DNA of 64,000 bases from Auanema rhodensis (Eukaryota; Animalia; Nematoda), in assembly GCA_964057225.1 (NCBI GenBank), contig OZ059894.1, positions 17,174,001-17,238,000 of the forward strand, read 5' to 3'. Of the stretch, positions 17,328 to 64,000 are shown one piece after another. The position numbers and the translations under genes were made by a program. Below the pieces are notes generated by a model that saw only the letters and a list, made by a program, of their open reading frames with translations, searched no databases and was not told the DNA's origin. The stretch's first letter is position 1; every line of letters begins with the position of its first letter.

Positions 17328-17399
17328 GGGCCGAACCGGGATTTGAACCCGGGACCTCTCGCACCCAAAGCGAGAATCATACCCCTAGACCATTCGGCC
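17328..17399 (-). tRNA. tRNA-Pro(TGG)
   Basis: 72-nt GGCCGAATGGTCTAGGGGTATGATTCTCGCTTTGGGTGCGAGAGGTCCCGGGTTCAAATCCCGGTTCGGCCC with full cloverleaf, A and B boxes, and a downstream TTTT. Confidence 0.96.
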
Positions 17400-25045: not shown

Positions 25046-25190
25046 TACTTGTCCATAATTATTTTTAACTGAATATTATTAACCTAATATCTATAGGTGA
25101 ACACTCAAGCTTAAAATTAATTGAATTTCAAGAGAACTGCAACTATATACTAAGAAGAAGTACACTTCTCGAAACAAAATATTAAAACGT
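25046..25190 (-). repeat. Solitary inverted copy of the array spacer (tRNA 3' flank)
   Basis: Reverse complement of ACGTTTTAACATTTTGTTTCGAGAAGTGTACTTC...CAGTTAAAAATAATTATGGAAAAGTA with a few mismatches, then unique sequence. Confidence 0.9.
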
Positions 25191-27634: not shown

Positions 27635-27831
27635 GGATCGATCCCCGGCTCGGCCCACGTTTTAACATTTTGTTGCGAGAAGTGTACTTCTTCTTCGTAT
27701 TTAGTTTAAGTTCTCTTGAAATTCAATTGATTTTAAGCTTTAGTATTCACCTCTAGATATCAGATTAATAATATTCAGTTAAAAATATATATGGAAAAGT
27801 AGAAGGTTCATCGTAGTGAATGGATATTTCA

Positions 27832-27903
27832 GGCCGAGTGGTCTAGTGGTATGATTCTCGCTTAGGGTGCGAGAGGTCCCGGGATCGATCCCCGGCTTGG
27901 CCC
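27832..27903 (+). tRNA. tRNA-Pro(AGG), first full array copy (one acceptor-stem C>T change)
   Basis: A box TGGTCTAGTGG, anticodon AGG, B box GGATCGATCC, TTTT terminator just downstream. Confidence 0.9.
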
Positions 27904-28078
27904 ACGTTTTAACATTTTGTTTCGAGAAGTGTACTTCTTCTTAGTATTTAGTGGAAGTTCTCTTGAAATTCAATTAATTTTAACCTTGAGTGTTCACCTA
28001 TAGATATCAGATTAATAATATTCAGTTAAAAATAATTATGGAAAAGTAGGAGGTTCATCGTAGTGAATGGATATTTCA

Positions 28079-28150
28079 GGCCGAGTGGTCTAGTGGTATG
28101 ATTCTCGCTTAGGGTGCGAGAGGTCCCGGGATCGATCCCCGGCTCGGCCC
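28079..28150 (+). tRNA. tRNA-Pro(AGG), consensus array copy (represents about 100 similar copies)
   Basis: Identical to the intronic gene at 22270-22341. Confidence 0.93.
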
Positions 28151-28325
28151 ACGTTTTAACATTTTGTTTCGAGAAGTGTACTTCTTCTTAGTATTTAGTG
28201 GAAGTTCTCTTGAAATTCAATTAATTTTAACCTTGAGTGTTCAGCTATAGATATCAGATTAATAATATTCAGTTAAAAATAATTATGGAAAAGTAGGAGG
28301 TTCATCGTAGTGAATGGATATTTCA

Positions 28326-28370
28326 GGCCGAGTGGTCTAGTGGTATGATTCTCGCTTAGGGTGCGAGAGG
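28326..28370 (+). pseudogene. 5'-half tRNA-Pro unit (127-bp deletion); same junction at 28984, 39967, 40338, 40709, 44044
   Basis: Junction GTGCGAGAGG|ATATCAGATT removes the T arm/B box, the 3' acceptor strand and the terminator. Confidence 0.9.
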
Positions 28371-30909
28371 ATATCAGATTAATAATATTCAGTTAAAAAT
28401 AATTATGGAAAAGTAGGAGGTTCATCGTAGTGAATGGATATTTCAGGCCGAGTGGTCTAGTGGTATGATTCTCGCTTAGGGTGCGAGAGGTCCCGGGATC
28501 GATCCCCGGCTCGGCCCACGTTTTAACATTTTGTTTCGAGAAGTGTACTTCTTCTTAGTATTTAGTGGAAGTTCTCTTGAAATTCAATTAATTTTAACCT
28601 TGAGTGTTCACCTATAGATATCAGATTAATAATATTCAGTTAAAAATAATTATGGAAAAGTAGGAGGTTCATCGTAGTGAATGGATATTTCAGGCCGAGT
28701 GGTCTAGTGGTATGATTCTCGCTTAGGGTGCGAGAGGTCCCGGGATCGATCCCCGGCTCGGCCCACGTTTTAACATTTTGTTTCGAGAAGTGTACTTCTT
28801 CTTAGTATTTAGTGGAAGTTCTCTTGAAATTCAATTAATTTTAACCTTGAGTGTTCACCTATAGATATCAGATTAATAATATTCAGTTAAAAATAATTAT
28901 GGAAAAGTAGGAGGTTCATCGTAGTGAATGGATATTTCAGGCCGAGTGGTCTAGTGGTATGATTCTCGCTTAGGGTGCGAGAGGATATCAGATTAATAAT
29001 ATTCAGTTAAAAATAATTATGGAAAAGTAGGAGGTTCATCGTAGTGAATGGATATTTCAGGCCGAGTGGTCTAGTGGTATGATTCTCGCTTAGGGTGCGA
29101 GAGGTCCCGGGATCGATCCCCGGCTTGGCCCACGTTTTAACATTTTGTTTCGAGAAGTGTACTTCTTCTTAGTATTTAGTGGAAGTTATCTTGAAATTCA
29201 ATTAATGTTGAGCTTTAGTATTCACCTATAGATATCAGATTAATAATATTCAGTTAAAAATAATCATGGAAAAGTAGGAGGTTCATCGTAGTGAATGGAT
29301 ATTTCAGGCCGAGTGGTCTAGTGGTATGATTCTCGCTTAGGGTGCGAGAGGTCCCGGGATCGATCCCCGGCTCGGCCCACGTTTTAACATTTTGTTTCGA
29401 GAAGTGTACTTCTTCTTAGTATTTAGTAGAAGTTCTCTTGAAATTCAATTAATTTTAAGCTTGAGTGTTCACCTATAGATATCAGATTAATAATATTCAG
29501 TTAAAAAAAACTATGGAAAAGTAGGACGTTCATCGTAGTGAATGGATATTTCAGGCCGAGTGGTCTAGTGGTATGATTCTCGCTTAGGGTGCGAGAGGTC
29601 CCGGGATCGATCCCCGGCTCGGCCCACATTTTAACATTTTGTTTCGAGAAGTGTACTTCTTCTTAGTATTTAGTAGAAGTTCTCTTGAAATTCAATTAAT
29701 TTTAAGCTTGAGTGTTCACCTATAGATATCAGATTAATAATATTCAGTTAAAAAAAACTATGGAAAAGTAGGACGTTCATCGTAGTGAATGGATATTTCA
29801 GGCCGAGTGGTCTAGTGGTATGATTCTCGCTTAGGGTGCGAGAGGTCCCGGGATCGATCCCCGGCTCGGCCCACATTTTAACATTTTGTTTCGAGAAGTG
29901 TACTTCTTCTTCGTATTTAGTGGAAGTTATCTTGAAATTCAATTAATGTTGAGCTTTAGTATTCACCTATAGATATCAGATTAATAATATTCAGTTAAAA
30001 AAAACTATGGAAAAGTAGGACGTTCATCGTAGTGAATGGATATTTCAGGCCGAGTGGTCTAGTGGTATGATTCTCGCTTAGGGTGCGAGAGGTCCCGGGA
30101 TCGATCCCCGGCTCGGCCCACATTTTAACATTTTGTTTCGAGAAGTGTACTTCTTCTTCGTATTTAGTGGAAGTTATCTTGAAATTCAATTAATGTTGAG
30201 CTTTAGTATTCACCTATAGATATCAGATTAATAATATTCAGTTAAAAATAATTATGGAAAAGTAGGAGGTTCATCGTAGTGAATGGATATTTCAGGCCGA
30301 GTGGTCTAGTGGTATGATTCTCGCTTAGGGTGCGAGAGGTCCCGGGATCGATCCCCGGCTCGGCCCACGTTTTAACATTTTGTTTCGAGAACTGTACTTC
30401 TTCTTTGTATTTAGTTGAAGTTCTCTTGAAATTCAATTAATGTTGAGCTTTAGTATTCACCTATAGATATCAGATTAATAATATTCAGTTAAAAATAATC
30501 ATGGAAAAGTAGGAGGTTCATCGTAGTGAATGGATATTTCAGGCCGAGTGGTCTAGTGGTATGATTCTCGCTTAGGGTGCGAGAGGTCCCGGGGTCGATC
30601 CCCGGCTCGGCCCACGTTTTAACATTTTGTTTCGAGAAGTGTACTTCTTCTTCGTATTTAGTTGTAGTTCTCTTGAAATTCATTTAATTTTAAGCTTGAG
30701 TGTTCACCTATAGATATCAGATTAATAATATTCAGTTAAAAAAAACTATGGAAAAGTAGAAGGTTCATCGTAATAAATGGATATTTCAGGCCGAGTGGTC
30801 TAGTGGTATGATTCTCGCTTAGGGTGCGAGAGGTCCCGGGATCGATCCCCGGCTCGGCCCACGTTTTAACATTTTGTTTCGAGAAGTGTACTTCTTCTTC
30901 GTATTTAGT

Positions 30910-31246
30910 CGTTTCATTCGGAAATCAATACGTAGCAGGCGGGTTAGAATTAGACGACATGAGGCTGAGAGAGGACGACACGCCCTTCATATGGAACACA
31001 GACTTCAGCTTTGCCTTATGGAATGACTATGGATGGTTGGTCTTCCTTTCTTAGCTCTCTTTCACTTTATATCTTTATGTAGACTTATATAACTTATTGT
31101 AATCATGTAGACATAATAAACCTTTCTTTCTCGAGTCTTATGTTTATCCATTATGCTCTTTATCTACCGCTACATCTGGAATACTATCACACTCATCTTG
31201 TAGGCTTTATTGGTCTATAGGATCGACGTGAGAGCATAACGGAACG
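30910..31246 (+). repeat. 5' LTR, copy 1
   Basis: CGTTTC...GGAACG ends, with internal TATATAA (31086) and AATAAA (31115). Confidence 0.92.
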
Positions 31247-31259
31247 TGGAGGTTCCACC
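31247..31259 (+). promoter_or_regulatory. Primer-binding site complementary to the tRNA-Gln 3' end (copy 2 at 36308-36320)
   Basis: TGGAGGTTCCACC is the reverse complement of GGTGGAACCT-CCA, the 3' end of metazoan cytosolic tRNA-Gln as I recall it. Confidence 0.8.
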
Positions 31260-33900
31260 TCGAACATATTTTGATTTCTTGACTATTTTCTCTTATATTT
31301 CGTTATTTTCACTACAATTCATTGAATCTGAATTCTCTTATATCTCTAAACCATCTACTCCATGTCTTAACACAATACGGTGGGGCCAACAACGTTTAAA
31401 AGGGAACAGATGCAAGGACCACTCCTTTTGGAGATGGATATTTTAAATTTTTTGAAACTGAAGTTATATTTTCCCGGTTGTTCACAATTTTCTGTCTGTC
31501 TGAACTCAACAATTTTTATATCCTTGCTGTTAACATCGAATACTCTGTTACCCGAACTCGAAGCATTTTTTGAGGACCCTAGGATGAATTAGTGAACAAA
31601 TTCACCCAAGGATAATTTTTTTTTTGAGATTTATGCCCACACTTTCTCCTTTTAAGGATTGATTTGGCTTCGAGGAAAGAATAGCCACGGTTATTTCTTT
31701 ATTTTTGTGGATGAAACAATTTTGTGCACCAAATAGAGTTTATTTCATATTTTGCGATCAGGACTATTTTATTTTGCGTTACATTTCTGTTCAGACAACT
31801 TTTTGCCATTAACATCCAAAAATATTTTGATAACGCATTGAATTTACACGGGAAACCTCACCTAAATAGGAGGAATATTATGAAAAGTGAATTTTAAGAT
31901 CGCTATAGTCCGAAAAATCCTGTACAATTTTACGAACTGAATTATTATTAGTGATTGTCTATCAGGTCGGGTTGGCTTAAGCATATCAGTTTGGATTTTC
32001 TCCCCTTACTATATGTCACCTTCCTCATACCGTTATTGTTGTTTTGAAGCATAAGACTCATTCCTAAACACCATAATTCTTTAAAAATAGTTATTGTAAT
32101 TTTTAGTCATCTATTCCTAGCCATAATTCTAAAACTAGATTTCTGATCATGATGGGACTACGGTACTTATTCGTTTTCCAAATTGCTTCCTTAAAGAGTA
32201 ATGCTATTACGAATGTACATTATGAAAACCGCTAAAATCCTTTGAACATTTACCAAAGTCCATTTTCGTGGCATTTTCGATCACTCGTGAGTCCAAGAAG
32301 ATCAGAATCGTCAGAAAAAGAAAAAAAAATGGGAATAAGGACTAATGAGATTGCTCAGGCATCAATCAAGTGAGCACTGAACATTTTTTGAACATATACA
32401 AACTGGTTGAATTATATACATTTAAGAATATTAAATTGGAAAGCGAACAAAGTCCAAATTTTCATACGGTAGTAGGCGGATCTCTGTTGATGGCCACAAC
32501 TCAGATTCATTCCTTAACGCCGACTATACAAACCAGTTACTCACAGCTTTCTCACCTCTTTTCCAAAATTCCTTATCCATAACACTCATTAACGTCTCAA
32601 AATCCCCCACGTTACTAAACACTCAAGGTTTTTCCAAACCAAGAGCGCTACCAAAGTGGATAAGCGATTCCGATCAGCTGTACCTCTCAGTACACGAACT
32701 GATTTTGATCTGCGAGACTCAGCTCCACTCACCAGAAGCCGAGCTCGCGCGCAGAGCATCGCTATAATCGAAGACGAGCAGAAAGCCGAGCACAGAACCG
32801 ACAAATTCTTTACTCCTCGTGCAGGCACTTATTCACCTACTGAACGATTAAGCGACGAGGATTACGTACCACCAGGAGGAGAAGAAACATCCATCTTAGT
32901 GGAAGAACAAACACCAGTTACTGCTAAAAAGTCATCAACGTTGAAGGAAACATGGTACAACTCAAGAATCCATTTGGAAAAATTCAAGACGTACACAAAG
33001 ACAATCTCAAACTTTTGCGATCAAATACAACGACTTATGACACGGACGACGACAGTAATATTGAGATCATAAAAGTCATAAATGGTAACGATAACTATGA
33101 CTCTACTGAAGAAACAGAACCAGAAGACCCATCGGACCAAAGTTGGCTACCACCAAGAAGAAGACGATGAAAGAAATAATTTCGAGATTGATAAAATTAT
33201 TGTAAAACTTTGTATCAACTCTCTTTTAAAAAACCAGAGCTATTAATATTATTATATCATTGAAAAACTTGAGTAAGACGAGATGTAAGCTAATAATCAA
33301 AAAGCATTTCAGTTTCAAAGCATATATGATTATAAAACTTCAATTTTTCAAAAAAAAAAAAAAAAAAAAAAAAAACATCAATTTCAAATAATTTCCCGTA
33401 AATAAAGAAGAAATGAAAGATAAGAGACATTATATAGCATATTCATCTGAGCAACAGTCCTTATCAAGTAGTTAATGATTCAATTCCGGAAATTATATGG
33501 GATTTAATTTTATTTTTTTATTATTACAATTCGCTTTGAATACGCTGAAGAAACATGCTAGCTCCATCGAAAATATAGCATGACTCTCGTTTCTCTATAC
33601 TCAAAGAAGTTAGACATGCAGCGTCGTGCATAAAGAGCTATTTCGCGCACATTCGCTGACAAAATATAGCCCTGGTATTCTAAAAGGTTCTTTTATTACT
33701 TAATATTCATGTATTTTCAAATATTTTTTATTAAATTCTTTTCAGATAAAATTGTTTAACATTATATTGTAATTTATCTTTACTATTTTTATGTTAACAT
33801 TGTAATTTTTATTTTTTAAATCTAAACCTTCTGCTACGATTGAAACAAGCCACATATTTTGCTATTCGCGAGGACGCGACATAAACTCGAAAAAATGGCA

Positions 33901-34237
33901 CGTTCCATTCGGAAATCAATACGTAGCAGGCGGGTTAGAATTAGACGACATGAGGCTGAGAGAGGACGACACGCCTTTCATATGGAACACAGACTTCAGC
34001 TTTGCCTTATGGAATGACTATGGATGGTTGGTCTTCCTTTCTTAGCTCTCTTTCACTATATATCTTTATGTAGACTTATATAACTTATTGTAATCATGTA
34101 GACATAATAAACCTTTCTTTCTCGAGTCTTATGTTTATCCATTATGCTCTTTATCTACCGCAACATCTGGAATACTATCACACTCATCTTGTAGGCTTTA
34201 TTGGTCTATAGGATCGACGTGAGAGCATAACGGAACG
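33901..34237 (+). repeat. 3' LTR, copy 1
   Basis: CGTTCC...GGAACG perfect 6-bp inverted ends, preceded by a weak purine-rich tract GAAAAAATGG. Confidence 0.92.
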
Positions 34238-35970
34238 TAGTTGAAGTTCTCTTGAAATTCAATTAATTTTAAGCTTGAGTGTTCACCTATAGATATCAGA
34301 TTAATAATATTCAGTTAAAAATAATTATGGAAACGTAGAAGGTTCATCGTAGTGAATGGATATTTCAGGCCGAGTGGTCTAGTGGTATGATTCTCGCTTA
34401 GGGTGCGAGAGGTCCCGGGATCGATCCCCGGCTCGGCCCACGTTTTAACATTTTGTTTCGAGAACTGTACTTCTTCTTTGTATTTAGTTGAAGTTCTCTT
34501 GAAATTCAATTAATGTTGAGCTTTAGTATTCACCTATAGATATCAGATTAATAATATGTAGTTAACAATAATTATGGAAAAGTAGAAGGTTCATCGTAGT
34601 GAATGGATAGTTCAGGCCGAGTGGTCTAGTGGTATGATTCTCGCTTAGGGTGCGAGAGGTCCCGGGATCGATCCCCGGCTCGGCCCACGTTTTAACATTT
34701 TGTTTCGAGAAGTGTACTTCTTCTTAGTATTTAATGGAAGTTCTCTTGAAATTCAATTAATTTTAAGCTTGAGTGTTCACCTATAGATATCAGATTAATA
34801 ATATGTAGTTAACAATAATTATGGAAAAGTAGAAGGTTCATCGTAGTGAATAGATAGTTCAGGCCGAGTGGTCTAGTGGTATGATTCTCGCTTAGGGTGC
34901 GAGAGGTCCCGGGATCGATCCCCGGCTCGGCCCACGTTTTAACATTTTGTTTCGAGAACTGTACTTCTTCTTTGTATTTAAGTGAAGTTCTCTTGAAATT
35001 CAATTAATGTTGAGCTTTAGTATTCACCTATAGATATCAGATTAATAATATTCAGTTAAAAATAATCATGGAAAAGTAGGAGGTTCATCGTAGTGAATGG
35101 ATATTTCAGGCCGAGTGGTCTAGTGGTATGATTCTCGCTTAGGGTGCGAGAGGTCCCGGGGTCGATCCCCGGCTCGGCCCACGTTTTAACATTTTGTTTC
35201 GAGAAGTGTACTTCTTCTTCGTATTTAGTTGAAGTTCTCTTGAAATTCAATTAATGTTGAGCTTTAGTATTCACCTATAGATATCAGATTAATAATATTC
35301 AGTTAAAAATAATCATGGAAAAGTAGGAGGTTCATCGTAGTGAATGGATATTTCAGGCCGAGTGGTCTAGTGGTATGATTCTCGCTTAGGGTGCGAGAGG
35401 TCCCGGGATCGATCCCCGGCTCGGCCCACGTTTTAACATTTTGTTTCGAGAACTGTACTTCTTCTTTGTATTTAAGTGAAGTTCTCTTGAAATTCAATTA
35501 ATGTTGAGCTTTAGTATTCACCTATAGATATCAGATTAATAATATTCAGTTAAAAATAATCATGGAAAAGTAGGAGGTTCATCGTAGTGAATGGATATTT
35601 CAGGCCGAGTGGTCTAGTGGTATGATTCTCGCTTAGGGTGCGAGAGGTCCCGGGGTCGATCCCCGGCTCGGCCCACGTTTTAACATTTTGTTTCGAGAAG
35701 TGTACTTCTTCTTCGTATTTAGTTGTAGTTCTCTTGAAATTCATTTAATTTTAAGCTTGAGTGTTCACCTATAGATATCAGATTAATAATATTCAGTTAA
35801 AAAAAACTATGGAAAAGTAGAAGGTTCATCGTAATAAATGGATATTTCAGGCCGAGTGGTCTAGTGGTATGATTCTCGCTTAGGGTGCGAGAGGTCCCGG
35901 GATCGATCCCCGGCTCGGCCCACGTTTTAACATTTTGTTTCGAGAAGTGTACTTCTTCTTCGTATTTAGT

Positions 35971-38900
35971 CGTTTCATTCGGAAATCAATACGTAGCAGG
36001 CGGGTTAGAGTTAGACGACATGAGGCTGAGAGAGGACGACACGCCCTTCATATGGAACACAGACTTCAGCTTTGCCTTATGGAATGACTATGGATGGTTG
36101 GTCTTCCTTTCTTAGCTCTCTTTCACTATATATCTTTATGTAGACTTATATAACTTATTGTAATCATGTAGACATAATAAACCTTTCTTTCTCGAGTCTT
36201 ATGTTTATCCATTATGCTCTTTATCTACCGCTACATCTGGAATACTATCACACTCATCTTGTAGGCTTTATTGGTCTATAGGATCGACGTGAGAGCATAA
36301 CGGAACGTGGAGGTTCCACCTCGAACATATTTTGATTTCTTGACTATTTTCTCTTATATTTCGTTATTTTCACTACAATTCATTGAATCTGAATTCTCTT
36401 ATATCTCTAAACCATCTACTCCATGTCTTAACACAATACGGTGGGGCCAACAACGTTTAAAAGGGAACAGATGCAAGGACCACTCCTTTTGGAGATGGAT
36501 ATTTTAAATTTTTTGAAACTGAAGTTATATTTTCCCGGTTGTTCACAATTTTCTGTCTGTCTGAACTCAACAATTTTTATATCCTTGCTGTTAACATCGA
36601 ATACTCTGTTACCCGAACTCGAAGCATTTTTTGAGGACCCTAGGATGAATTAGTGAACAAATTCACCCAAGGATAATTTTTTTTTTGAGATTCATGCCCA
36701 CACTTTCTCCTTTTAAGGATTGATTTGGCTTCGAGGAAAGAATAGCCACGGTTATTTCTTTATTTTTGTGGATGAAACAATTTTGTGCACCAAATAGAGT
36801 TTATTTCATATTTTGCGATCAGGACTATTTTATTTTGCGTTACATTTCTGTTCAGACAACTTTTTGCCATTAACATCCAAAAATATTTTGATAACGCATT
36901 GAATTTACACGGGAAACCTCACCTAAATAGGAGGAATATTATGAAAAGTGAATTTTAAGATCGCTATAGTCCGAAAAATCCTGTACAATTTTACGAACTG
37001 AATTATTATTAGTGATTGTCTATCAGGTCGGGTTGGCTTAAGCATATCAGTTTGGATTTTCTCCCCTTACTATATGTCACCTTCCTCATACCGTTATTGT
37101 TGTTTTGAAGCATAAGACTCATTCCTAAACACCATAATTCTTTAAAAATAGTTATTGTAATTTTTAGTCATCTATTCCTAGCCATAATTCTAAAACTAGA
37201 TTTCTGATCATGATGGGACTACGGTACTCATTCGTTTTCCAAATTGCTTCCTTAAAGAGTAATGCTATTACGAATGTACATTATGAAAACCGCTAAAATC
37301 CTTTGAACATTTACCAAAGTCCATTTTCGTGGCATTTTCGATCACTCGTGAGTCCAAGAAGATCAGAATCGTCAGAAAAAGAAAAAAAAATGGGAATAAG
37401 GACTAATGAGATTGCTCAGGCATCAATCAAGTGAGCACTGAACATTTTTTGAACATATACAAACTGGTTGAATTATATACATTTAAGAATATTAAATTGG
37501 AAAGCGAACAAAGTCCAAATTTTCATACGGTAGTAGGCGGATCTCTGTTGATGGCCACAACTCAGATTCATTCCTTAACGCCGACTATACAAACCAGTTA
37601 CTCACAGCTTTCTCACCTCTTTTCCAAAATTCCTTATCCATAACACTCATTAACGTCTCAAAATCCCCCACGTTACTAAACACTCAAGGTTTTTCCAAAC
37701 CAAGAGCGCTACCAAAGTGGATAAGCGATTCCGATCAGCTGTACCTCTCAGTACACGAACTGATTTTGATCTGCGAGACTCAGCTCCACTCACCAGAAGC
37801 CGAGCTCGCGCGCAGAGCATCGCTATAATCGAAGACGAGCAGAAAGCCGAGCACAGAACCGACAAATTCTTTACTCCTCGTGCAGGCACTTATTCACCTA
37901 CTGAACGATTAAGCGACGAGGATTACGTACCACCAGGAGGAGAAGAAACATCCATCTTAGTGGAAGAACAAACACCAGTTACTGCTAAAAAGTCATCAAC
38001 GTTGAAGGAAACATGGTACAACTCAAGAATCCATTTGGAAAAATTCAAGACGTACACAAAGACAATCTCAAACTTTTGCGATCAAATACAACGACTTATG
38101 ACACGGACGACGACAGTAATATTGAGATCATAAAAGTCATAAATGGTAACGATAACTATGACTCTACTGAAGAAACAGAACCAGAAGACCCATCGGACCA
38201 AAGTTGGCTACCACCAAGAAGAAGACGATGAAAGAAATAATTTCGAGATTGATAAAATTATTGTAAAACTTTGTATCAACTCTCTTTTAAAAAACCAGAG
38301 CTATTAATATTATTATATCATTGAAAAACTTGAGTAAGACGAGATGTAAGCTAATAATCAAAAAGCATTTCAGTTTCAAAGCATATATGATTATAAAACT
38401 TCAATTTTTCAAAAAAAAAAAAAAAAAAAAAAAAAACATCAATTTCAAATAATTTCCCGTAAATAAAGAAGAAATGAAAGATAAGAGACATTATATAGCA
38501 TATTCATCTGAGCAACAGTCCTTATCAAGTAGTTAATGATTCAATTCCGGAAATTATATGGGATTTAATTTTATTTTTTTATTATTACAATTCGCTTTGA
38601 ATACGCTGAAGAAACATGCTAGCTCCATCGAAAATATAGCATGACTCTCGTTTCTCTATACTCAAAGAAGTTAGACATGCAGCGTCGTGCATAAAGAGCT
38701 ATTTCGCGCACATTCGCTGACAAAATATAGCCCTGGTATTCTAAAAGGTTCTTTTATTACTTAATATTCATGTATTTTCAAATATTTTTTATTAAATTCT
38801 TTTCAGATAAAATTGTTTAACATTATATTGTAATTTATCTTTACTATTTTTATGTTAACATTGTAATTTTTATTTTTTAAATCTAAACCTTCTGCTACGA

Positions 38901-39298
38901 TTGAAACAAGCCACATATTTTGCTATTCGCGAGGACGCGACATAAACTCGAAAAAATGGCACGTTCCATTCGGAAATCAATACGTAGCAGGCGGGTTAGA
39001 ATTAGACGACATGAGGCTGAGAGAGGACGACACGCCTTTCATATGGAACACAGACTTCAGCTTTGCCTTATGGAATGACTATGGATGGTTGGTCTTCCTT
39101 TCTTAGCTCTCTTTCACTATATATCTTTATGTAGACTTATATAACTTATTGTAATCATGTAGACATAATAAACCTTTCTTTCTCGAGTCTTATGTTTATC
39201 CATTATGCTCTTTATCTACCGCAACATCTGGAATACTATCACACTCATCTTGTAGGCTTTATTGGTCTATAGGATCGACGTGAGAGCATAACGGAACG
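35971..39298 (+). mobile_element. Non-autonomous LTR retroelement, copy 2 (LTRs 35971-36307 and 38962-39298)
   Basis: Near-identical to copy 1 at offset 5061, with the same TSD and the same position within the unit. Confidence 0.92.
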
Positions 39299-50298: not shown

Positions 50299-50370
50299 GG
50301 CCGAGTGGTCTAGTGGTATGATTCTCGCTTATTGTGCGAGAGGTCCCGGGATCGATCCCCGGCTCGGCCC
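50299..50370 (+). tRNA. tRNA-Pro body with anticodon ATT (Asn-reading); also at anticodon positions 52800, 53047, 56999, 60704; probably non-functional
   Basis: CTCGC TT ATT GT GCGAG replaces CTCGC TT AGG GT GCGAG. The rest of the cloverleaf is intact in four of the five copies. Confidence 0.8.
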
Positions 50371-53300: not shown

Positions 53301-56300
53301 GAGAGGTCCCGGGATCGATCCCCGGCTCGGCCCACATTTTAACATTTTGTTTCGAGAAGTGTACTTCTTCTTTGTATTTAGTTTAAGTTCTCTTGAAATT
53401 CAATTAGTGTTGAGCTTTAGTATTCACCTATAGATATCAGATTAATAATATTCAGTTAAAAATAATTATGGAAACGTAGAAGGTTCATCGTAGTGAATGG
53501 ATATTTCAGGCCGAGTGGTCTAGTGGTATGATTCTCGCTTAGGGTGCGAGAGGTCCCGGGATCGATCCCCGGCTCGGCCCACGTTTTAACATTTTTTTTC
53601 GAGAAGTGTACTTCTTCTTAGTATTTAGTGGAAGTTCTCTTGAAATTCAATTAATTTTAAGCTTTAGTATTCACCTATAGATATCAGATTAATAATATTC
53701 AGTTAAAAATAATTATGGAAACGTAGAAGGTTCATCGTAGTGAATGGATATTTCAGGCCGAGTGGTCTAGTGGTATGATTCTCGCTTAGGGTGCGAGAGG
53801 TCCCGGGATCGATCCCCGGCTCGGCCCACGTTTTAACATTTTGTTTCGAGAAGTGTACTTCTTCTTCGTATTTAGTTTAAGTTCTCTTGAAATTCAATTA
53901 TTGTTGAGCTTTAGTATTCACCTATAGATATCAGATTAATAATATTCAGTTAAAAATAATTATGGAAACGTAGAAGGTTCATCGTAGTGAATGAATATTT
54001 CAGGCCGAGTGGTCTAGTGGTATGATTCTCGCTTAGGGTGCGAGAGGTCACGGAATCGATCCCCGGCTCGACCCACGTTTTAACATTTTGTTTCGAGAAG
54101 TGTACTTCTTCTTAGTGTTTATTGGAAGTTCTCTTGAAATTCAATTAATGTTGAGCTTGAGTGTTCACCTATAGATATCAGATTAATAATATTCAGTTAA
54201 AAATATATATGGAAAAGTAGGAGGTTCATCGTAGTGAATGGATATTTCAGGCCGAGTGGTCTAGTGGTATGATTCTCGCTTAGGGTGCGAGAGGTCCCGG
54301 GATCGATCCCCGGCTCGGCCCCTGTTTTAACATTTTGTTTCGAGAAGTGTACTTCTTCTTCGTATTTAGTTTAAGTTCTCTTGAAATTCAATTATTGTTG
54401 AGCTTTAGTATTCACCTATAGATATCAGATTAATAATATTCAGTTAAAAATAATTATGGAAACGTAGAAGGTTCATCGTAGTGAATGGATATTTCAGGCC
54501 GAGTGGTCTAGTGGTATGATTCTCGCTTAGGGTGCGAGAGGTCCCGGGATCGATCCCCGGCTCGGCCCACGTTTTAACATTTTGTTTCGAGAAGTGTACT
54601 TCTTCTTCGTATTTAGTTTAAGTTCTCTTGAAATTCAATTATTGTTGAGCTTTAGTATTCACCTATAGATATCAGATTAATAATATTCAGTTAAACATAT
54701 ATATGGAAACGTAGAAGGTTCATCGTAGTGAATGGATATTTCAGGCCGAGTGGTCTAGTGGTATGATTCTCGCTTAGGGTGCGAGAGGTCACGGGATCGA
54801 TCCCCGGCTCGAACCACGTTTTAACATTTTGTTTCGAGAAGTGTACTTCTTCTTAGTGTTTATTGGAAGTTCTCTTGAAATTCAATTAATTTTAAGCTTG
54901 AGTGTTCACCTATAGATATCAGATTAATAATATTCAGTTAAAAATAATTATGGAAACGTAGAAGGTTCATCGTAGTGAATGGATATTTCAGGCCGAGTGG
55001 TCTAGTGGTATGATTCTCGCTTAGGGTGCGAGAGGTCCCGGGATCGATCCCCGGCTCGGCCCACGTTTTAACATTTTGTTTCGAGAAGTGTACTTCTTCT
55101 TCGTATTTAGTTTAAGTTCTCTTGAAATTCAATTATTGTTGAGCTTTAGTATTCACCTATAGATATCAGATTAATAATATTCAGTTAAAAATAATTATGG
55201 AAACGTAGAAGGTTCATCGTAGTGAATGAATATTTCAGGCCGAGTGGTCTAGTGGTATGATTCTCGCTTAGGGTGCGAGAGGTCACGGAATCGATCCCCG
55301 GCTCGACCCACGTTTTAACATTTTGTTTCGAGAAGTGTACTTCTTCTTAGTGTTTATTGGAAGTTCTCTTGAAATTCAATTAATGTTGAGCTTGAGTGTT
55401 CACCTATAGATATCAGATTAATAATATTCAGTTAAAAATATATATGGAAAAGTAGGAGGTTCATCGTAGTGAATGGATATTTCAGGCCGAGTGGTCTAGT
55501 GGTATGATTCTCGCTTAGGGTGCGAGAGGTCCCGGGATCGATCCCCGGCTCGGCCCCTGTTTTAACATTTTGTTTCGAGAAGTGTACTTCTTCTTCGTAT
55601 TTAGTTTAAGTTCTCTTGAAATTCAATTATTGTTGAGCTTTAGTATTCACCTATAGATATCAGATTAATAATATTCAGTTAAAAATAATTATGGAAACGT
55701 AGAAGGTTCATCGTAGTGAATGGATATTTCAGGCCGAGTGGTCTAGTGGTATGATTCTCGCTTAGGGTGCGAGAGGTCCCGGGATCGATCCCCGGCTCGG
55801 CCCACGTTTTAACATTTTGTTTCGAGAAGTGTACTTCTTCTTCGTATTTAGTTTAAGTTCTCTTGAAATTCAATTATTGTTGAGCTTTAGTATTCACCTA
55901 TAGATATCAGATTAATAATATTCAGTTAAAAATAATTATGGAAACGTAGAAGGTTCATCGTAGTGAATGAATATTTCAGGCCGAGTGGTCTAGTGGTATG
56001 ATTCTCGCTTAGGGTGCGAGAGGTCACGGAATCGATCCCCGGCTCGAACCACGTTTTAACATTTTGTTTCGAGAAGTGTACTTCTTCTTAGTGTTTATTG
56101 GAAGTTCTCTTGAAATTCAATTAATTTTAAGCTTTAGTATTCACCTATAGATATCAGATTAATAATATTCAGTTAAAAATAATTATGGAAACGTAGAAGG
56201 TTCATCGTAGTGAATGAATATTTCAGGCCGAGTGGTCTAGTGGTATGATTCTCGCTTAGGGTGCGAGAGGTCCCGGGATCGATCCCCGGCTCGGCCCACG

Positions 56301-59300
56301 TTTTAACATTTTTTTTCGAGAAGTGTACTTCTTCTTAGTATTTAGTGGAAGTTCTCTTGAAATTCAATTAATTTTAAGCTTTAGTATTCACCTATAGATA
56401 TCAGATTAATAATATTCAGTTAAAAATAATTATGGAAACGTAGAAGGTTCATCGTAGTGAATGGATATTTCAGGCCGAGTGGTCTAGTGGTATGATTCTC
56501 GCTTAGGGTGCGAGAGGTCCCGGGATCGATCCCCGGCTCGGCCCACGTTTTAACATTTTTTTTCGAGAAGTGTACTTCTTCTTAGTATTTAGTGGAAGTT
56601 CTCTTGAAATTCAATTAATTTTAAGCTTTAGTATTCACCTATAGATATCAGATTAATAATATTCAGTTAAAAATAATTATGGAAACGTAGAAGGTTCATC
56701 GTAGTGAATGGATATTTCAGGCCGAGTGGTCTAGTGGTATGATTCTCGCTTAGGGTGCGAGAGGTCACGGAATCGATCCCCGGCTCGACCCACGTTTTAA
56801 CATTTTGTTTCGAGAAGTGTACTTCTTCTTAGTGTTTATTGGAAGTTCTCTTGAAATTCAATTAATTTTAAGCTTGAGTGTTCACCTATAGATATCAGAT
56901 TAATAATATTCAGTTAAAAATAATTATGGAAACGTAGAGGGTTCATCGTAGTGAATGGATATTTCAGGCCGAGTGGTCTAGTGGTATGATTCTCGCTTAT
57001 TGTGCGAGAGGTCCCGGGATCGATCCCCGGCTCGGCCCACATTTCAACATTTTGTTTCGAGAAGTGTACTTCTTCTTAGTGTTTATTGGAAGTTCTCTTG
57101 AAATTCAATTAATTTTAAGCTTGAGTGTTCACCTATAGATATCAGATTAATAATATTCAGTTAAAAATATATATGGAAAAGTAGGAGGTTCATCGTAGTG
57201 AATGGATATTTCAGGCCCAGTGGTCTAGTGGTATGATTCTCGCTTAGGGTGCGAGAGGTCCCGGGATCGATCCCCGGCTCGGCCCACATTTTAACATTTT
57301 GTTTCGAGAAGTGTACTTCTTCTTTGTATTTAGTTTAAGTTCTCTTGAAATTCAATTAGTGTTGAGCTTTAGTATTCACCTATAGATATCAGATTAATAA
57401 TATTCAGTTAAAAATAATTATGGAAACGTAGAAGGTTCATCGTAGTGAATGGATATTTCAGGCCGAGTGGTCTAGTGGTATGATTCTCGCTTAGGGTGCG
57501 AGAGGTCCCGGGATCGATCCCCGGCTCGGCCCACGTTTTAACATTTTTTTTCGAGAAGTGTACTTCTTCTTAGTATTTAGTGGAAGTTCTCTTGAAATTC
57601 AATTAATTTTAAGCTTTAGTATTCACCTATAGATATCAGATTAATAATATTCAGTTAAAAATAATTATGGAAACGTAGAAGGTTCATCGTAGTGAATGGA
57701 TATTTCAGGCCGAGTGGTCTAGTGGTATGATTCTCGCTTAGGGTGCGAGAGGTCCCGGGATCGATCCCCGGCTCGGCCCACGTTTTAACATTTTGTTTCG
57801 AGAAGTGTACTTCTTCTTCGTATTTAGTTTAAGTTCTCTTGAAATTCAATTATTGTTGAGCTTTAGTATTCACCTATAGATATCAGATTAATAATATTCA
57901 GTTAAACATATATATGGAAACGTAGAAGGTTCATCGTAGTGAATGGATATTTCAGGCCGAGTGGTCTAGTGGTATGATTCTCGCTTAGGGTGCGAGAGGT
58001 CACGGGATCGATCCCCGGCTCGAACCACGTTTTAACATTTTGTTTCGAGAAGTGTACTTCTTCTTAGTGTTTATTGGAAGTTCTCTTGAAATTCAATTAA
58101 TTTTAAGCTTGAGTGTTCACCTATAGATATCAGATTAATAATATTCAGTTAAAAATAATTATGGAAACGTAGAAGGTTCATCGTAGTGAATGGATATTTC
58201 AGGCCGAGTGGTCTAGTGGTATGATTCTCGCTTAGGGTGCGAGAGGTCCCGGGATCGATCCCCGGCTCGGCCCACGTTTTAACATTTTGTTTCGAGAAGT
58301 GTACTTCTTCTTCGTATTTAGTTCAAGTTCTCTTGAAATTCAATTATTGTTGAGCTTTAGTATTCACCTATAGATATCAGATTAATAATATTCAGTTAAA
58401 AATAATTATGGAAACGTAGAAGGTTCATCGTAGTGAATGAATATTTCAGGCCGAGTGGTCTAGTGGTATGATTCTCGCTTAGGGTGCGAGAGGTCACGGA
58501 ATCGATCCCCGGCTCGACCCACGTTTTAACATTTTGTTTCGAGAAGTGTACTTCTTCTTAGTGTTTATTGGAAGTTCTCTTGAAATTCAATTAATTTTAA
58601 GCTTGAGTGTTCACCTATAGATATCAGATTAATAATATTCAGTTAAAAATAATTATGGAAACGTAGAGGGTTCATCGTAGTGAATGGATATTTCAGGCCG
58701 AGTGGTCTAGTGGTATGATTCTCGCTTAGGGTGCGAGAGGTCCCGGGATCGATCCCCGGCTCGGCCCACATTTTAACATTTTGTTTCGAGAAGTGTACTT
58801 CTTCTTTGTATTTAGTTTAAGTTCTCTTGAAATTCAATTAGTGTTGAGCTTTAGTATTCACCTATAGATATCAGATTAATAATATTCAGTTAAAAATAAT
58901 TATGGAAACGTAGAAGGTTCATCGTAGTGAATGGATATTTCAGGCCGAGTGGTCTAGTGGTATGATTCTCGCTTAGGGTGCGAGAGGTCCCGGGATCGAT
59001 CCCCGGCTCGGCCCACGTTTTAACATTTTTTTTCGAGAAGTGTACTTCTTCTTAGTATTTAGTGGAAGTTCTCTTGAAATTCAATTAATTTTAAGCTTTA
59101 GTATTCACCTATAGATATCAGATTAATAATATTCAGTTAAAAATAATTATGGAAACGTAGAAGGTTCATCGTAGTGAATGGATATTTCAGGCCGAGTGGT
59201 CTAGTGGTATGATTCTCGCTTAGGGTGCGAGAGGTCCCGGGATCGATCCCCGGCTCGGCCCACGTTTTAACATTTTGTTTCGAGAAGTGTACTTCTTCTT

Positions 59301-62300
59301 CGTATTTAGTTTAAGTTCTCTTGAAATTCAATTATTGTTGAGCTTTAGTATTCACCTATAGATATCAGATTAATAATATTCAGTTAAAGATATATATGGA
59401 AACGTAGAAGGTTCATCGTAGTGAATGGATATTTCAGGCCGAGTGGTCTAGTGGTATGATTCTCGCTTAGGGTGCGAGAGGTCACGGGATCGATCCCCGG
59501 CTCGAACCACGTTTTAACATTTTGTTTCGAGAAGTGTACTTCTTCTTAGTGTTTATTGGAAGTTCTCTTGAAATTCAATTAATTTTAAGCTTGAGTGTTC
59601 ACCTATAGATATCAGATTAATAATATTCAGTTAAAAATAATTATGGAAACGTAGAGGGTTCATCGTAGTGAATGGATATTTCAGGCCGAGTGGTCTAGTG
59701 GTATGATTCTCGCTTAGGGTGCGAGAGGTCCCGGGATCGATCCCCGGCTCGGCCCACGTTTTAACATTTTGTTTCGAGACGTGTACTTCTTCTTTGTATT
59801 TAGTTTAAGTTCTCTTGAAATTCAATTAATGTTGAGCTTTAGTATTCACCTATAGATATCAGATTAATAATATTCAATTAAAAATATATATGGAAAAGTA
59901 GAAGGTTCATCGTAGTGAATGGATATTTCAGGCCGAGTGGTCTAGTGGTATGATTCTCGCTTAGGGTGCGAGAGGTCCCGGGATCGATCCCCGGCTCGGC
60001 CCACGTTTTAACATTTTTTTTCGAGAAGTGTACTTCTTCTTAGTATTTAGTGGAAGTTCTCTTGAAATTCAATTAATTTTAAGCTTTAGTATTCACCTAT
60101 AGATATCAGATTAATAATATTCAGTTAAAAATAATTATGGAAACGTAGAAGGTTCATCGTAGTGAATGGATATTTCAGGCCGAGTGGTCTAGTGGTATGA
60201 TTCTCGCTTAGGGTGCGAGAGGTCCCGGGATCGATCCCCGGCTCGGCCCACGTTTTAACATTTTGTTTCGAGAAGTGTACTTCTTCTTCGTATTTAGTTT
60301 AAGTTCTCTTGAAATTCAATTATTGTTTAGCTTTAGTATTCACCTATAGATATCAGATTAATAATATTCAGTTAAACATATATATGGAAAAGTAGGAGGT
60401 TCATCGTAGTGAATGGATATTTCAGGCCGAGTGGTCTAGTGGTATGATTCTCGCTTAGGGTGCGAGAGGTCACCGGATCGATCCCCAGCTCGACCCACGT
60501 TTTAACATTTTGTTTCGAGAAGTGTACTTCTTCTTAGTGTTTATTGGAAGTTCTCTTGAAATTCAATTAATTTTAAGCTTGAGTGTTCACCTATAGATAT
60601 CAGATTAATAATATTCAGTTAAAAATAATTATGGAAACGTAGAGGGTTCATCGTAGTGAATGGATATTTCAGGCCGAGTGGTCTAGTGGTATGATTCTCG
60701 CTTATTGTGCGAGAGGTCCCGGGATCGATCCCCGGCTCGGCCCACATTTCAACATTTTGTTTCGAGAAGTGTACTTCTTCTTAGTGTTTATTGGAAGTTC
60801 TCTTGAAATTCAATTAATTTTAAGCTTGAGTGTTCACCTATAGATATCGGATTAATAATATTCAGTTAAAAATATATATGGAAAAGTAGGAGGTTCATCG
60901 TAGTGAATGGATATTTCAGGCCCAGTGGTCTAGTGGTATGATTCTCGCTTAGGGTGCGAGAGGTCCCGGGATCGATCCCCGGCTCGGCCCACATTTTAAC
61001 ATTTTGTTTCGAGAAGTGTACTTCTTCTTTGTATTTAGTTTAAGTTCTCTTGAAATTCAATTAGTGTTGAGCTTTAGTATTCACCTATAGATATCAGATT
61101 AATAATATTCAGTTAAAAATAATTATGGAAACGTAGAAGGTTCATCGTAGTGAATGGATATTTCAGGCCGAGTGGTCTAGTGGTATGATTCTCGCTTAGG
61201 GTGCGAGAGGTCCCGGGATCGATCCCCGGCTCGGCCCACGTTTTAACATTTTTTTTCGAGAAGTGTACTTCTTCTTAGTATTTAGTGGAAGTTCTCTTGA
61301 AATTCAATTAATTTTAAGCTTTAGTATTCACCTATAGATATCAGATTAATAATATTCAGTTAAAAATAATTATGGAAACGTAGAAGGTTCATCGTAGTGA
61401 ATGGATATTTCAGGCCGAGTGGTCTAGTGGTATGATTCTCGCTTAGGGTGCGAGAGGTCCCGGGATCGATCCCCGGCTCGGCCCACGTTTTAACATTTTG
61501 TTTCGAGAAGTGTACTTCTTCTTCGTATTTAGTTTAAGTTCTCTTGAAATTCAATTATTGTTGAGCTTTAGTATTCACCTATAGATATCAGATTAATAAT
61601 ATTCAGTTAAACATATATATGGAAACGTAGAAGGTTCATCGTAGTGAATGGATATTTCAGGCCGAGTGGTCTAGTGGTATGATTCTCGCTTAGGGTGCGA
61701 GAGGTCACGGGATCGATCCCCGGCTCGAACCACGTTTTAACATTTTGTTTCGAGAAGTGTACTTCTTCTTAGTGTTTATTGGAAGTTCTCTTGAAATTCA
61801 ATTAATTTTAAGCTTGAGTGTTCACCTATAGATATCAGATTAATAATATTCAGTTAAAAATAATTATGGAAACGTAGAAGGTTCATCGTAGTGAATGGAT
61901 ATTTCAGGCCGAGTGGTCTAGTGGTATGATTCTCGCTTAGGGTGCGAGAGGTCCCGGGATCGATCCCCGGCTCGGCCCACGTTTTAACATTTTGTTTCGA
62001 GAAGTGTACTTCTTCTTCGTATTTAGTTCAAGTTCTCTTGAAATTCAATTATTGTTGAGCTTTAGTATTCACCTATAGATATCAGATTAATAATATTCAG
62101 TTAAAAATAATTATGGAAACGTAGAAGGTTCATCGTAGTGAATGAATATTTCAGGCCGAGTGGTCTAGTGGTATGATTCTCGCTTAGGGTGCGAGAGGTC
62201 ACGGAATCGATCCCCGGCTCGACCCACGTTTTAACATTTTGTTTCGAGAAGTGTACTTCTTCTTAGTGTTTATTGGAAGTTCTCTTGAAATTCAATTAAT

Positions 62301-64000
62301 TTTAAGCTTGAGTGTTCACCTATAGATATCAGATTAATAATATTCAGTTAAAAATAATTATGGAAACGTAGAGGGTTCATCGTAGTGAATGGATATTTCA
62401 GGCCGAGTGGTCTAGTGGTATGATTCTCGCTTAGGGTGCGAGAGGTCCCGGGATCGATCCCCGGCTCGGCCCACATTTTAACATTTTGTTTCGAGAAGTG
62501 TACTTCTTCTTTGTATTTAGTTTAAGTTCTCTTGAAATTCAATTAGTGTTGAGCTTTAGTATTCACCTATAGATATCAGATTAATAATATTCAGTTAAAA
62601 ATAATTATGGAAACGTAGAAGGTTCATCGTAGTGAATGGATATTTCAGGCCGAGTGGTCTAGTGGTATGATTCTCGCTTAGGGTGCGAGAGGTCCCGGGA
62701 TCGATCCCCGGCTCGGCCCACGTTTTAACATTTTTTTTCGAGAAGTGTACTTCTTCTTAGTATTTAGTGGAAGTTCTCTTGAAATTCAATTAATTTTAAG
62801 CTTTAGTATTCACCTATAGATATCAGATTAATAATATTCAGTTAAAAATAATTATGGAAACGTAGAAGGTTCATCGTAGTGAATGGATATTTCAGGCCGA
62901 GTGGTCTAGTGGTATGATTCTCGCTTAGGGTGCGAGAGGTCCCGGGATCGATCCCCGGCTCGGCCCACGTTTTAACATTTTGTTTCGAGAAGTGTACTTC
63001 TTCTTCGTATTTAGTTTAAGTTCTCTTGAAATTCAATTATTGTTGAGCTTTAGTATTCACCTATAGATATCAGATTAATAATATTCAGTTAAACATATAT
63101 ATGGAAACGTAGAAGGTTCATCGTAGTGAATGGATATTTCAGGCCGAGTGGTCTAGTGGTATGATTCTCGCTTAGGGTGCGAGAGGTCACGGGATCGATC
63201 CCCGGCTCGAACCACGTTTTAACATTTTGTTTCGAGAAGTGTACTTCTTCTTAGTGTTTATTGGAAGTTCTCTTGAAATTCAATTAATTTTAAGCTTGAG
63301 TGTTCACCTATAGATATCAGATTAATAATATTCAGTTAAAAATAATTATGGAAACGTAGAAGGTTCATCGTAGTGAATGGATATTTCAGGCCGAGTGGTC
63401 TAGTGGTATGATTCTCGCTTAGGGTGCGAGAGGTCCCGGGATCGATCCCCGGCTCGGCCCACGTTTTAACATTTTGTTTCGAGAAGTGTACTTCTTCTTC
63501 GTATTTAGTTTAAGTTCTCTTGAAATTCAATTATTGTTTAGCTTTAGTATTCACCTATAGATATCAGATTAATAATATTCAGTTAAACATATATATGGAA
63601 AAGTAGGAGGTTCATCGTAGTGAATGGATATTTCAGGCCGAGTGGTCTAGTGGTATGATTCTCGCTTAGGGTGCGAGAGGTCACCGGATCGATCCCCGGC
63701 TCGACCCACGTTTTAACATTTTGTTTCGAGAAGTGTACTTCTTCTTAGTGTTTATTGGAAGTTCTCTTGAAATTCAATTAATTTTAAGCTTGAGTGTTCA
63801 CCTATAGATATCAGATTAATAATATTCAGTTAAAAATAATTATGGAAACGTAGAAGGTTCATCGTAGTGAATGGATATTTCAGGCCGAGTGGTCTAGTGG
63901 TATGATTCTCGCTTAGAGTGCGAGAGGTCACCGGATCGATCCCCGGCTCGACCCACGTTTTAACATTTTGTTTCGAGAAGTGTACTTCTTCTTAGTGTTT

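Follow-up and report, generated by a model that had tools for sequence, protein, structure and literature searches.

The window analysed here, a 64,000-nt stretch of the Auanema rhodensis genome, holds a long tandem array of proline tRNA genes. On the left, the array is preceded by nmr-2 exons and by genes for a neuropeptide-like product and a kinase. A Pro/Ala-rich gene is present in duplicate. The array has a period of 247 bp, which TRF follows from 27635 to 64000 (score 35,594) and which is still going at the window end. Its parts and its left border, numbered from the first letter of the window, are the following.

22270–22341, minus strand: isolated tRNA-Pro(AGG) within an intron of nmr-2, equal to the array consensus, including A54
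25046–25262, minus strand: solitary inverted unit, whose consensus-identical tRNA is followed by 145 nt matching the 3′ spacer of the array at 91.7% identity
26726–27634, plus strand: GC-rich open frame adjoining the truncated first tRNA, at the left array edge
27635–30909, plus strand: proximal array block, with 12 full-length tRNA-Pro(AGG) and two 120-bp truncated units
28326–28445, plus strand: example of the 120-bp deletion unit, in which tRNA nucleotides 1–45 are fused to spacer position 172 onward
30910–34237, plus strand: LTR retroelement, first copy, 3.3 kb, inserted in spacer
34238–35970, plus strand: seven array units between the two LTR element copies
35971–39298, plus strand: LTR retroelement, second copy, a segmental duplication with a period of 5,061 bp
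39299–64000, plus strand: main array block, continuing beyond the window end
45112–45358, plus strand: reference unit, with the tRNA at 45112–45183 and a spacer of 175 bp

ARAGORN predicts 108 tRNAs on the plus strand of the array, 103 of them Pro(AGG), four ‘Asn(ATT)’ and one ‘Ser(AGA)’, the last five calls being anticodon mutants. Anchor-based segmentation gives 123 tRNA starts, spaced start to start by 247 bp (109 times), 251 bp (4), 246 bp (1), 120 bp (6) or 3579 bp (2), and these comprise 117 full-length copies of 72 nt and six truncated copies of 45 nt. The consensus tRNA, to which 84 of the 117 full-length copies are identical, scores 52.4 bits against the Rfam threshold of 29 for RF00005. 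The gathering score is reached by 107/117 copies: 98 score at least 43.9 bits and nine are marginal, while ten fall below the threshold. The left end of the array falls within a tRNA, at linear position 51. A sequence-only reading of this DNA had described more than 36 kb of 247-bp units. The period does span 27635–64000, but the actual tDNA within this 36-kb region amounts to only ~29.7 kb, because an LTR element of 3.3 kb occupies both 30910–34237 and 35971–39298, and its two copies make up the ~6.7 kb of non-array DNA. The same reading had taken the array for a tDNA satellite with over 100 units of Pol III type, and this is backed by the TRF period, the ARAGORN calls, the segmentation and the unit comparisons alike. 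The array of proline tRNA genes is genuine, and its anatomy is read directly.

A and B boxes had been noted in most units. The A box of the reference unit, TGGTCTAGTGG, agrees with the consensus TRGCNNAGTGG except at position 11, where it has a T, as is common. Its B box stretch is GGGATCGATCC, and the B box as read, GGATCGATCCC, makes a single departure from the consensus GGTTCGANNCC, an A in place of T54. A54 is also found in eukaryotic initiator tRNA genes, which are transcribed. Two metagenome scans, one for the tRNA with a free T loop and one for the A54 T arm, returned no match, a result that is silent on the rarity of A54 because the scans had no positive control for the T54 form. The TTTT terminator, likewise noted in most units, is borne out in 114 of the 123 units, where the run begins 4 nt past the tRNA, and the array unit has an additional TTTT at +12. 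Because most copies appear to retain all the requirements for Pol III, many of them are probably transcribable. The spacer holds no short tandem repeats by TRF, and the Rfam search found no other RNA families in it beyond one chance-level miRNA match. A tRNA-derived SINE is ruled out as the nature of the repeat: the copies stand strictly head to tail and are not dispersed, they carry no poly-A or simple-repeat tail, and the 3′ flank of an array unit passes directly into the next 5′ flank.

The LTR element is flanked by a 4-bp target duplication (TAGT). Its LTRs of ~337 bp are 98.8% identical, its primer-binding site pairs with the 3′ end of tRNA-Gln, and no long ORF is found within 30910–34237. 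The element occurs twice because a block of ~4 kb was duplicated, 30254–34285 and 35315–39346 differing by 6 mismatches. The divergences place the events in order, from the units (~5%) through the LTR pair (1.2%) to the duplicated insert block (0.15%).

Block copying is also visible among the tRNA units themselves. Neighbouring units are ~95% identical, whereas the identity rises to 97.5% between units three apart (44.4–51.8 kb) and to 97.3% at a distance of 15 units (52–64 kb). A 3-unit (741-bp) higher-order repeat lies at ~40.8–47.1 kb and a 15-unit (3,705-bp) one in the distal array; the longest exact repeats measure 2,244 bp at an offset of 3,705 bp and 1,204 bp at an offset of 741 bp. The 120-bp deletion unit exemplified at 28326 is found again at 28940, 39923, 40294, 40665 and 44000, that is, at six positions in three places. 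Constant-length monomers run head to tail across tens of kilobases, and multi-unit blocks exceed neighbours in identity, both of which are hallmarks of satellite DNA; the array evolves in satellite fashion. Exact repeats of up to 2.2 kb, together with an adjacent 1,038-bp stretch duplicated with zero mismatches, could be taken as signs that a few units were inflated through mis-assembly. However, the ~5% divergence of the units forms an ordered, nested pattern, and besides 63 different unit sequences the array contains deletion variants as well as a retroelement flanked by its target-site duplication. With ordered variation, deletion variants and an element so flanked, an inflated collapse is therefore extremely unlikely to be the source of the array.

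How the units change bears on whether the tRNA is protected. A nearly invariant tRNA beside a variable spacer had been reported for the proximal part, and the per-site mismatch is indeed 0.0093 in the tRNA versus 0.039 in the spacer. However, the surplus is confined to three hot patches (unit positions 112–124, 142–161 and 197–221), a partition of the spacer columns that was chosen post hoc, after inspection of the data. In the remaining 117 spacer columns, two thirds of the spacer, parsimony counts 0.32 events per site versus 0.40 in the tRNA (p = 0.38), and the two rates are equal in the proximal half and the distal half alike. The tRNA thus receives no special protection over the cold spacer, although these equal rates leave its neutrality unproven if the cold spacer is itself constrained, as in the terminator region or the upstream flank. 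The sameness of the copies probably comes mainly from recent copying and not from selection on each copy. In the proximal half, 49 of the 61 units of exactly 247 bp have the consensus tRNA, and therefore some array-level selection, or gene conversion from dispersed copies, may be at work.

Decay of the tRNA is tolerated in the array. Seventeen copies form a dead subfamily with a common haplotype of uncompensated substitutions, at least two of them in helices (C48A and G69A, plus G52A, C70A or G50C). They lie nearly all beyond 52.5 kb, one per three or four units, so that the subfamily makes up about one third of the distal units, and it is undergoing amplification. Dead units whose B box is broken by G53A are spreading freely, and five array copies have an ATT anticodon. 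The spread of this subfamily, like the equal rates in the cold spacer, weakens the view that selection maintains the tRNA and leaves the spacer to drift.

These observations also weigh on two functional readings of the array. It could be a selected high-dosage locus in an animal that needs much tRNA-Pro(AGG), for example in oocytes or embryos, as in Xenopus, where oocyte-type 5S and tRNA repeats are amplified. The 84 identical copies and the 98 with high scores fit such a demand, as does the preservation, in nearly all units, of T4 terminators, of the A box and of a B box close to consensus, and a solitary intronic gene with the same 72 nt indicates that the product is probably a working tRNA-Pro(AGG). 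Yet the tRNA changes at the rate of most of the spacer, a dead subfamily that makes up about one third of the distal units is being amplified and ATT anticodons are tolerated; we regard this reading as unlikely. Alternatively, the array might serve as a structural chromatin element, in which dense binding of TFIIIC, Pol III or condensin would set a boundary, load condensin or mediate pairing. The presence of over 100 A/B-box pairs at close spacing would suit this role; tDNAs in yeasts are barriers and condensin sites, and a human tRNA tandem repeat has been proposed as a boundary. The free spread of units whose B box is broken argues against it, and we hold such a role to be very improbable.

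The left flank provides clues to the origin of the unit. The 72-nt consensus is probably the working tRNA-Pro(AGG) of the species, because the solitary gene in the nmr-2 intron is identical to it. The inverted unit shares its 5′ flank with that intronic tRNA and parts from the array unit at the wrap into the next 5′ flank. Because this solitary copy has the tRNA with 145 nt of 3′ spacer, the satellite would have originated from a tRNA gene and its 3′ flank. Also beside the array, a 1,038-bp piece of nmr-2 that includes pore-region exons is the stretch duplicated with zero mismatches. At the border itself, a protein search found no relatives of the ORF at 26798–27577, and Pfam was likewise empty for the border ORF. 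Its assignment to a DIRS-like retroelement fragment, which had only a motif behind it, was dropped.

The genes of the left flank also matter for the somatic fate of the array. In A. rhodense, the DNA removed from somatic cells by programmed DNA elimination contains many highly repeated ncRNA loci, tRNA arrays included (10.64898/2026.08.27.747507), which favours placing the present array in such a germline-restricted region. In the window 1–64000, however, neither a 29-nt palindrome built on a GGC/GCC core nor one of the form TAGGC...GCCTA is present, nor is any near-perfect 24–31-nt palindrome with GGC (12–14-nt arms, at most 2 mismatches), and its GGC-N3/4-GCC cores lack palindromic arms, the best pairing at 3 of 10 positions; the SFE motif scanned for combines a verbal description with the O. 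tipulae GGC/GCC core and may differ from the A. rhodense matrix. The telomere repeat TTAGGC is likewise found nowhere in 1–64000, 25–27.6 kb included. Within the window, the suggestion of a germline-restricted repeat or a chromosome end therefore finds no support. With neither a break-site palindrome nor a telomere repeat in the window, any break would therefore leave the array joined to the nmr-2, neuropeptide-like and kinase genes, and it would share their somatic fate. Only 3% of protein-coding genes are eliminated in A. rhodense (10.64898/2026.08.27.747507), which further speaks against elimination here. A fate shared with nmr-2 therefore makes germline restriction less likely, and we consider it quite unlikely; on these sequence grounds, the array may be retained in somatic cells.

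Satellite DNA with higher-order repeats is typified by primate alpha satellite. The array resembles DNA of this type in its ~95% alike monomers, its 97–100% alike blocks, its local homogenisation and its retroelement insertion, but differs in that the monomer holds a gene that looks intact, complete with a promoter and a terminator. Tandem tRNA genes repeated on a satellite scale are also known from Entamoeba, whose units carry as many as 5 different tRNAs and in some cases 5S, the genes being separated by short microsatellite-like repeats (PMC2652664). Here there is one tRNA per unit, the spacer has no short tandem repeats and solitary copies exist besides. An Entamoeba-type organisation is ruled out by the single tRNA per unit and the lack of short-period spacer repeats. 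Local tandem amplification of tRNA genes with unequal exchange has likewise been described on chromosome 1 of Arabidopsis thaliana, in a plant lineage and with a three-gene unit, the 27 Ser-Tyr-Tyr triplets there being far fewer than the units here (PMC2886086). A tRNA-bearing variable-number tandem repeat at human 1q23.3, proposed as a boundary element, has a 7.3-kb unit that contains a CTCF site along with several tRNAs and is present in 9–43 copies, as against 247 bp and ~120 or more copies here (PMC4041453).

A close parallel comes from A. rhodense, probably from the same genome, for which 19,554 tRNA loci with only 215 pseudogenes have been reported, along with tandem tRNA, 5S and U2 blocks, some of the repeated blocks combining several tRNA loci (Gonzalez de la Rosa et al., bioRxiv 2026, 10.64898/2026.08.27.747507). 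That preprint treats the arrays in one sentence, under germline-restricted repeats, and gives no anatomy, isoacceptors or turnover analysis (10.64898/2026.08.27.747507). In contrast to those germline-restricted repeats, the present array has conserved genes next to it, from which no break-site motif separates it; its tRNA content of 29% by length (72/247) is also at odds with the stated ncRNA density of always <20% per 10 kb (10.64898/2026.08.27.747507). Tandem tRNA arrays in this worm are already known in outline, and what is added here is the anatomy and turnover of one of them.

Based on the above data, we propose that the locus is probably a tDNA satellite, formed by tandem amplification of a tRNA-Pro(AGG) gene and turning over as satellites do. 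A single founder tRNA gene, together with 26 nt on its 5′ side and 149 nt on its 3′ side, would have been duplicated head to tail, and growth to ~120–140 units may have proceeded via unequal crossing-over or replication slippage. Multi-unit blocks would then have been copied, so that variants spread locally. A retroelement would have inserted in a spacer and later been duplicated itself, and the dead tRNA variants would have been carried along within copied blocks. One could go further and view the array as a somatically retained, transcribed super-locus for an unusual A54 tRNA-Pro(AGG), arrays of this kind acting also as recombination hubs that remodel neighbour genes; the 1,038-bp piece of nmr-2 might then have been copied when a crossover or a template switch took place within a tRNA. 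This extended scenario is speculative and, in our estimate, decidedly improbable.

As a tDNA satellite, the array offers a fine-grained case of a working gene behaving as satellite DNA, in which the events can be followed from the first amplification, through the insertion of a retroelement and the duplication of a block, to the spreading of dead copies. Identical gene copies in such arrays need not imply selection. If the array is indeed retained in somatic cells, the tRNA arrays of this worm would not be limited to germline-only DNA; this would affect counts of ‘functional’ tRNA genes, such as the 19,554 reported, and would bear on the idea put forward in the preprint that repeats accumulate where elimination relaxes selection (10.64898/2026.08.27.747507).

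The 247-bp period of the array begins at 27635 and extends through the end of the window (Tandem Repeats Finder; score 35,594 for 44044-64000), with sub-periods of 494, 367/371 and 120 bp. ARAGORN identifies 111 tRNA genes in the whole window, 108 of which lie within the array, all on the plus strand, and are labeled Pro(AGG) (103), "Asn(ATT)" (4) and "Ser(AGA)" (1), the last five calls being anticodon mutants of the array's Pro(AGG) gene. The remaining three are located to the left of the array:

17328-17399, minus strand, Pro(TGG) tRNA
22270-22341, minus strand, Pro(AGG) tRNA, in an intron of nmr-2
25191, minus strand, Pro(AGG) tRNA

Segmentation anchored at the tRNA start yields 123 tRNA starts, spaced by 247 (109 cases), 251 (4), 246 (1), 120 (6) and 3579 bp (2), with 117 full-length 72-nt copies and six truncated ones. 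Of the full-length copies, 84 are identical to the consensus and 107 reach the Rfam tRNA gathering score; the consensus itself scores 52.4 bits (threshold 29) and the neighboring Pro(TGG) 58. TTTT begins 4 nt past the tRNA in 114 of the 123 units. The sequence-only reading of more than 100 units with a complete tRNA-Pro(AGG), mostly followed by a TTTT terminator, is confirmed by these counts. Two full-length copies that differ only by G5C (47829-47900 and 49558-49629) are called by ARAGORN but do not appear in the Rfam gathering-threshold list, which is probably a filter effect, since a single mismatch should not cost so much score. The proposed extent of more than 36 kb of 247-bp units is correct for the period, but two stretches are occupied by a retroelement:

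30910-34237, 3,328 bp, LTR retroelement copy 1, within the array
35971-39298, 3,328 bp, LTR retroelement copy 2, within the array

As these stretches are not array sequence, the tDNA in the window amounts to ~29.7 kb.

A unit-by-unit haplotype map and lag analysis show that the array has a satellite-type, higher-order structure, in agreement with its initial description as a tDNA satellite. Neighboring units are ~95% identical; units three apart reach 97.5% at 44.4-51.8 kb, where three unit types form a 741-bp repeat that recurs at 40.8-42.5 kb, and units fifteen apart reach 97.3% at 52-64 kb. The longest exact repeat spans 2,244 bp at an offset of 3,705 bp (57145-59388 = 60850-63093), and another of 1,204 bp occurs at the 741-bp offset. 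The 120-bp unit derives from one deletion that places spacer position 172 directly after tRNA position 45; its six occurrences, in three places, always lie within a 367- or 371-bp compound unit. Divergence gives the events a relative order, with ~5% between units, 1.2% between the LTRs and 0.15% between the copies of the duplicated insert block. Taken together, the exact repeats, the higher-order repeats, the shared deletion and this divergence series point to ongoing, repeated unequal exchange or slippage.

In the proximal part, the tRNA had been described as nearly invariant beside a variable spacer. This holds for the raw mismatch per site (0.0093 in the tRNA vs 0.039 in the spacer), which is fourfold lower in the tRNA and elevenfold lower in the proximal half, but not for the notion of a gene that is kept while its spacer drifts. 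Because the copies are related, parsimony events were counted over a tree built from the 63 distinct unit sequences, giving 0.40 events per site for the tRNA vs 0.81 for the whole spacer (p = 0.0002). The spacer excess is confined to three patches of 1.2-2.2 events per site, at unit positions 112-124, 142-161 and 197-221, corresponding in the reference unit (45112-45358, plus strand) to:

45223-45235, first hot patch, spacer
45253-45272, second hot patch, spacer
45308-45332, third hot patch, spacer

The other 117 spacer columns, about two thirds, show 0.32 events per site vs 0.40 for the tRNA (p = 0.38), for a hot/cold split chosen after data inspection and in a test that is weaker should the cold spacer be under constraint of its own. 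For the same pair, tRNA and cold spacer, the values are 0.21 vs 0.21 in the proximal half and 0.18 vs 0.12 in the distal half. The rate of change in the tRNA gene therefore matches that in most of the spacer, and the uniformity of the copies is mostly explained by recent copying.

Substitutions in the tRNA fall mostly in helices, without compensation. A dead haplotype common to 17 copies combines C48A and G69A with G52A, C70A or G50C; these copies are passengers of copied blocks, nearly all lying beyond 52.5 kb and recurring there at intervals of three or four units. An ATT anticodon on a proline-type body is found in five copies, which likewise recur as members of copied blocks:

50299, tRNA start, ATT-anticodon copy
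52768, tRNA start, ATT-anticodon copy that also has the dead haplotype
53015, tRNA start, ATT-anticodon copy
56967, tRNA start, ATT-anticodon copy
60672, tRNA start, ATT-anticodon copy

If expressed and charged, such copies could misread codons.

The LTR element has direct terminal repeats of ~337 bp (4 differences, 98.8% identical), a primer-binding site for tRNA-Gln directly after the 5' LTR (complementary to the 3' end of that tRNA), and a flanking 4-bp TAGT target duplication within the array spacer, with the insertion point inside the first hot patch. It is non-autonomous, and no long ORF was found in it. Its ends read CG...CG and it contains an internal A26 run. The element is present twice because a block was duplicated at a 5,061-bp period (30254-34285 vs 35315-39346, 6 mismatches); the two element copies differ at 4 positions.

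All stems of the array tRNA are paired as in other eukaryotic tRNA-Pro genes. Most units had been credited with A and B boxes; the A box agrees with its consensus, but the B box carries A54 in place of the usual T. The T loop is ATCGATC in every unit (e.g. 45164-45170), with G54 in four copies. In elongator tRNAs, T at position 54 is nearly universal, and an ordinary TTCAAAT loop is seen in the Pro(TGG) gene, 10 kb from the array. The solitary Pro(AGG) gene in the nmr-2 intron is identical to the array tRNA, A54 included, so that A54 is probably this animal's normal Pro(AGG) form rather than an array-specific defect. Eukaryotic initiator tRNAs bear A54 and are transcribed; by analogy, a B box with A54 is probably usable.

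The copy at 25191 is followed by 145 nt that match the array's 3' spacer at 91.7% identity, and it departs from the array exactly where the unit wraps into the 26 nt preceding the next tRNA. This divergence point is consistent with an array founded by duplication of one gene together with 26 nt of upstream and 149 nt of downstream sequence. Its 5' flank is that of the nmr-2 intron tRNA gene: 22262-23299 and 25183-26220 share 1,038 bp without a single mismatch, comprising the intron tRNA flank and two pore-region exons of nmr-2, with one edge in the tRNA-Pro(AGG) and its trailer. The perfect identity and the edge within the tRNA suggest that this piece of nmr-2 was probably copied only very recently, by a crossover or template switch within a tRNA; the copy lies 2.4 kb from the array. 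The first base of the array lies inside a tRNA (linear position 51) and adjoins an open frame:

26726-27634, GC-rich open frame of 283 codons, cut off at the array start

Its region has 44% GC vs ~33% in the surroundings; Pfam gave no match to the frame and a protein search turned up nothing related, and it may be a mobile-element fragment. Farther left, 2118-2941 and 4922-5745 form a tandem gene duplicate (period 2,804 bp) with a secreted-looking product containing Gly/Cys-rich and Ala-Pro-Val-Tyr repeat regions.

Germline-restricted DNA was among the roles proposed for the array. Somatic cells of A. rhodense lose 61% of the genome but only 3% of genes, at breaks marked by a 29-nt palindrome resembling that of Oscheius tipulae (doi 10.64898/2026.08.27.747507), whose conserved center is GGC-NNN-GCC (PMC13060919). 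Using the verbal description of the A. rhodense motif and the O. tipulae core, we found in the whole window no qualifying 29-nt palindrome with at least 11/14 arm pairs, no qualifying GGC-N3/4-GCC core with arms scored, no TAGGC...GCCTA form and no TTAGGC repeat. The GGCTCGGCC cores, which are numerous, belong to the tRNA acceptor arm and reach at most 3/10 arm pairs. Any break would therefore leave the array joined to nmr-2, a kinase gene and a neuropeptide-like gene; given that so few genes are eliminated, retention in the soma is more likely than germline restriction. An older short-read somatic assembly contains only ~500 tRNA loci (PMC6469403), which could reflect elimination or array collapse.

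Tandem tRNA arrays are also present in Xenopus and zebrafish. They have been reported in Entamoeba (PMC2652664), Arabidopsis (PMC2886086) and, as a variable tandem repeat, in human (PMC4041453); our literature search found no nematode report other than that on A. rhodense, with 19,554 tRNA loci and repeats including tandem tRNA, 5S and U2 blocks (doi 10.64898/2026.08.27.747507). The present array is thus one more of a kind already reported in outline from this species. Added here are the detailed anatomy of the array, evidence of satellite-type turnover, a tRNA gene whose rate of change equals that of most of its spacer, A54 in the T loop, and the finding that no break-site motif separates the array from conserved genes.
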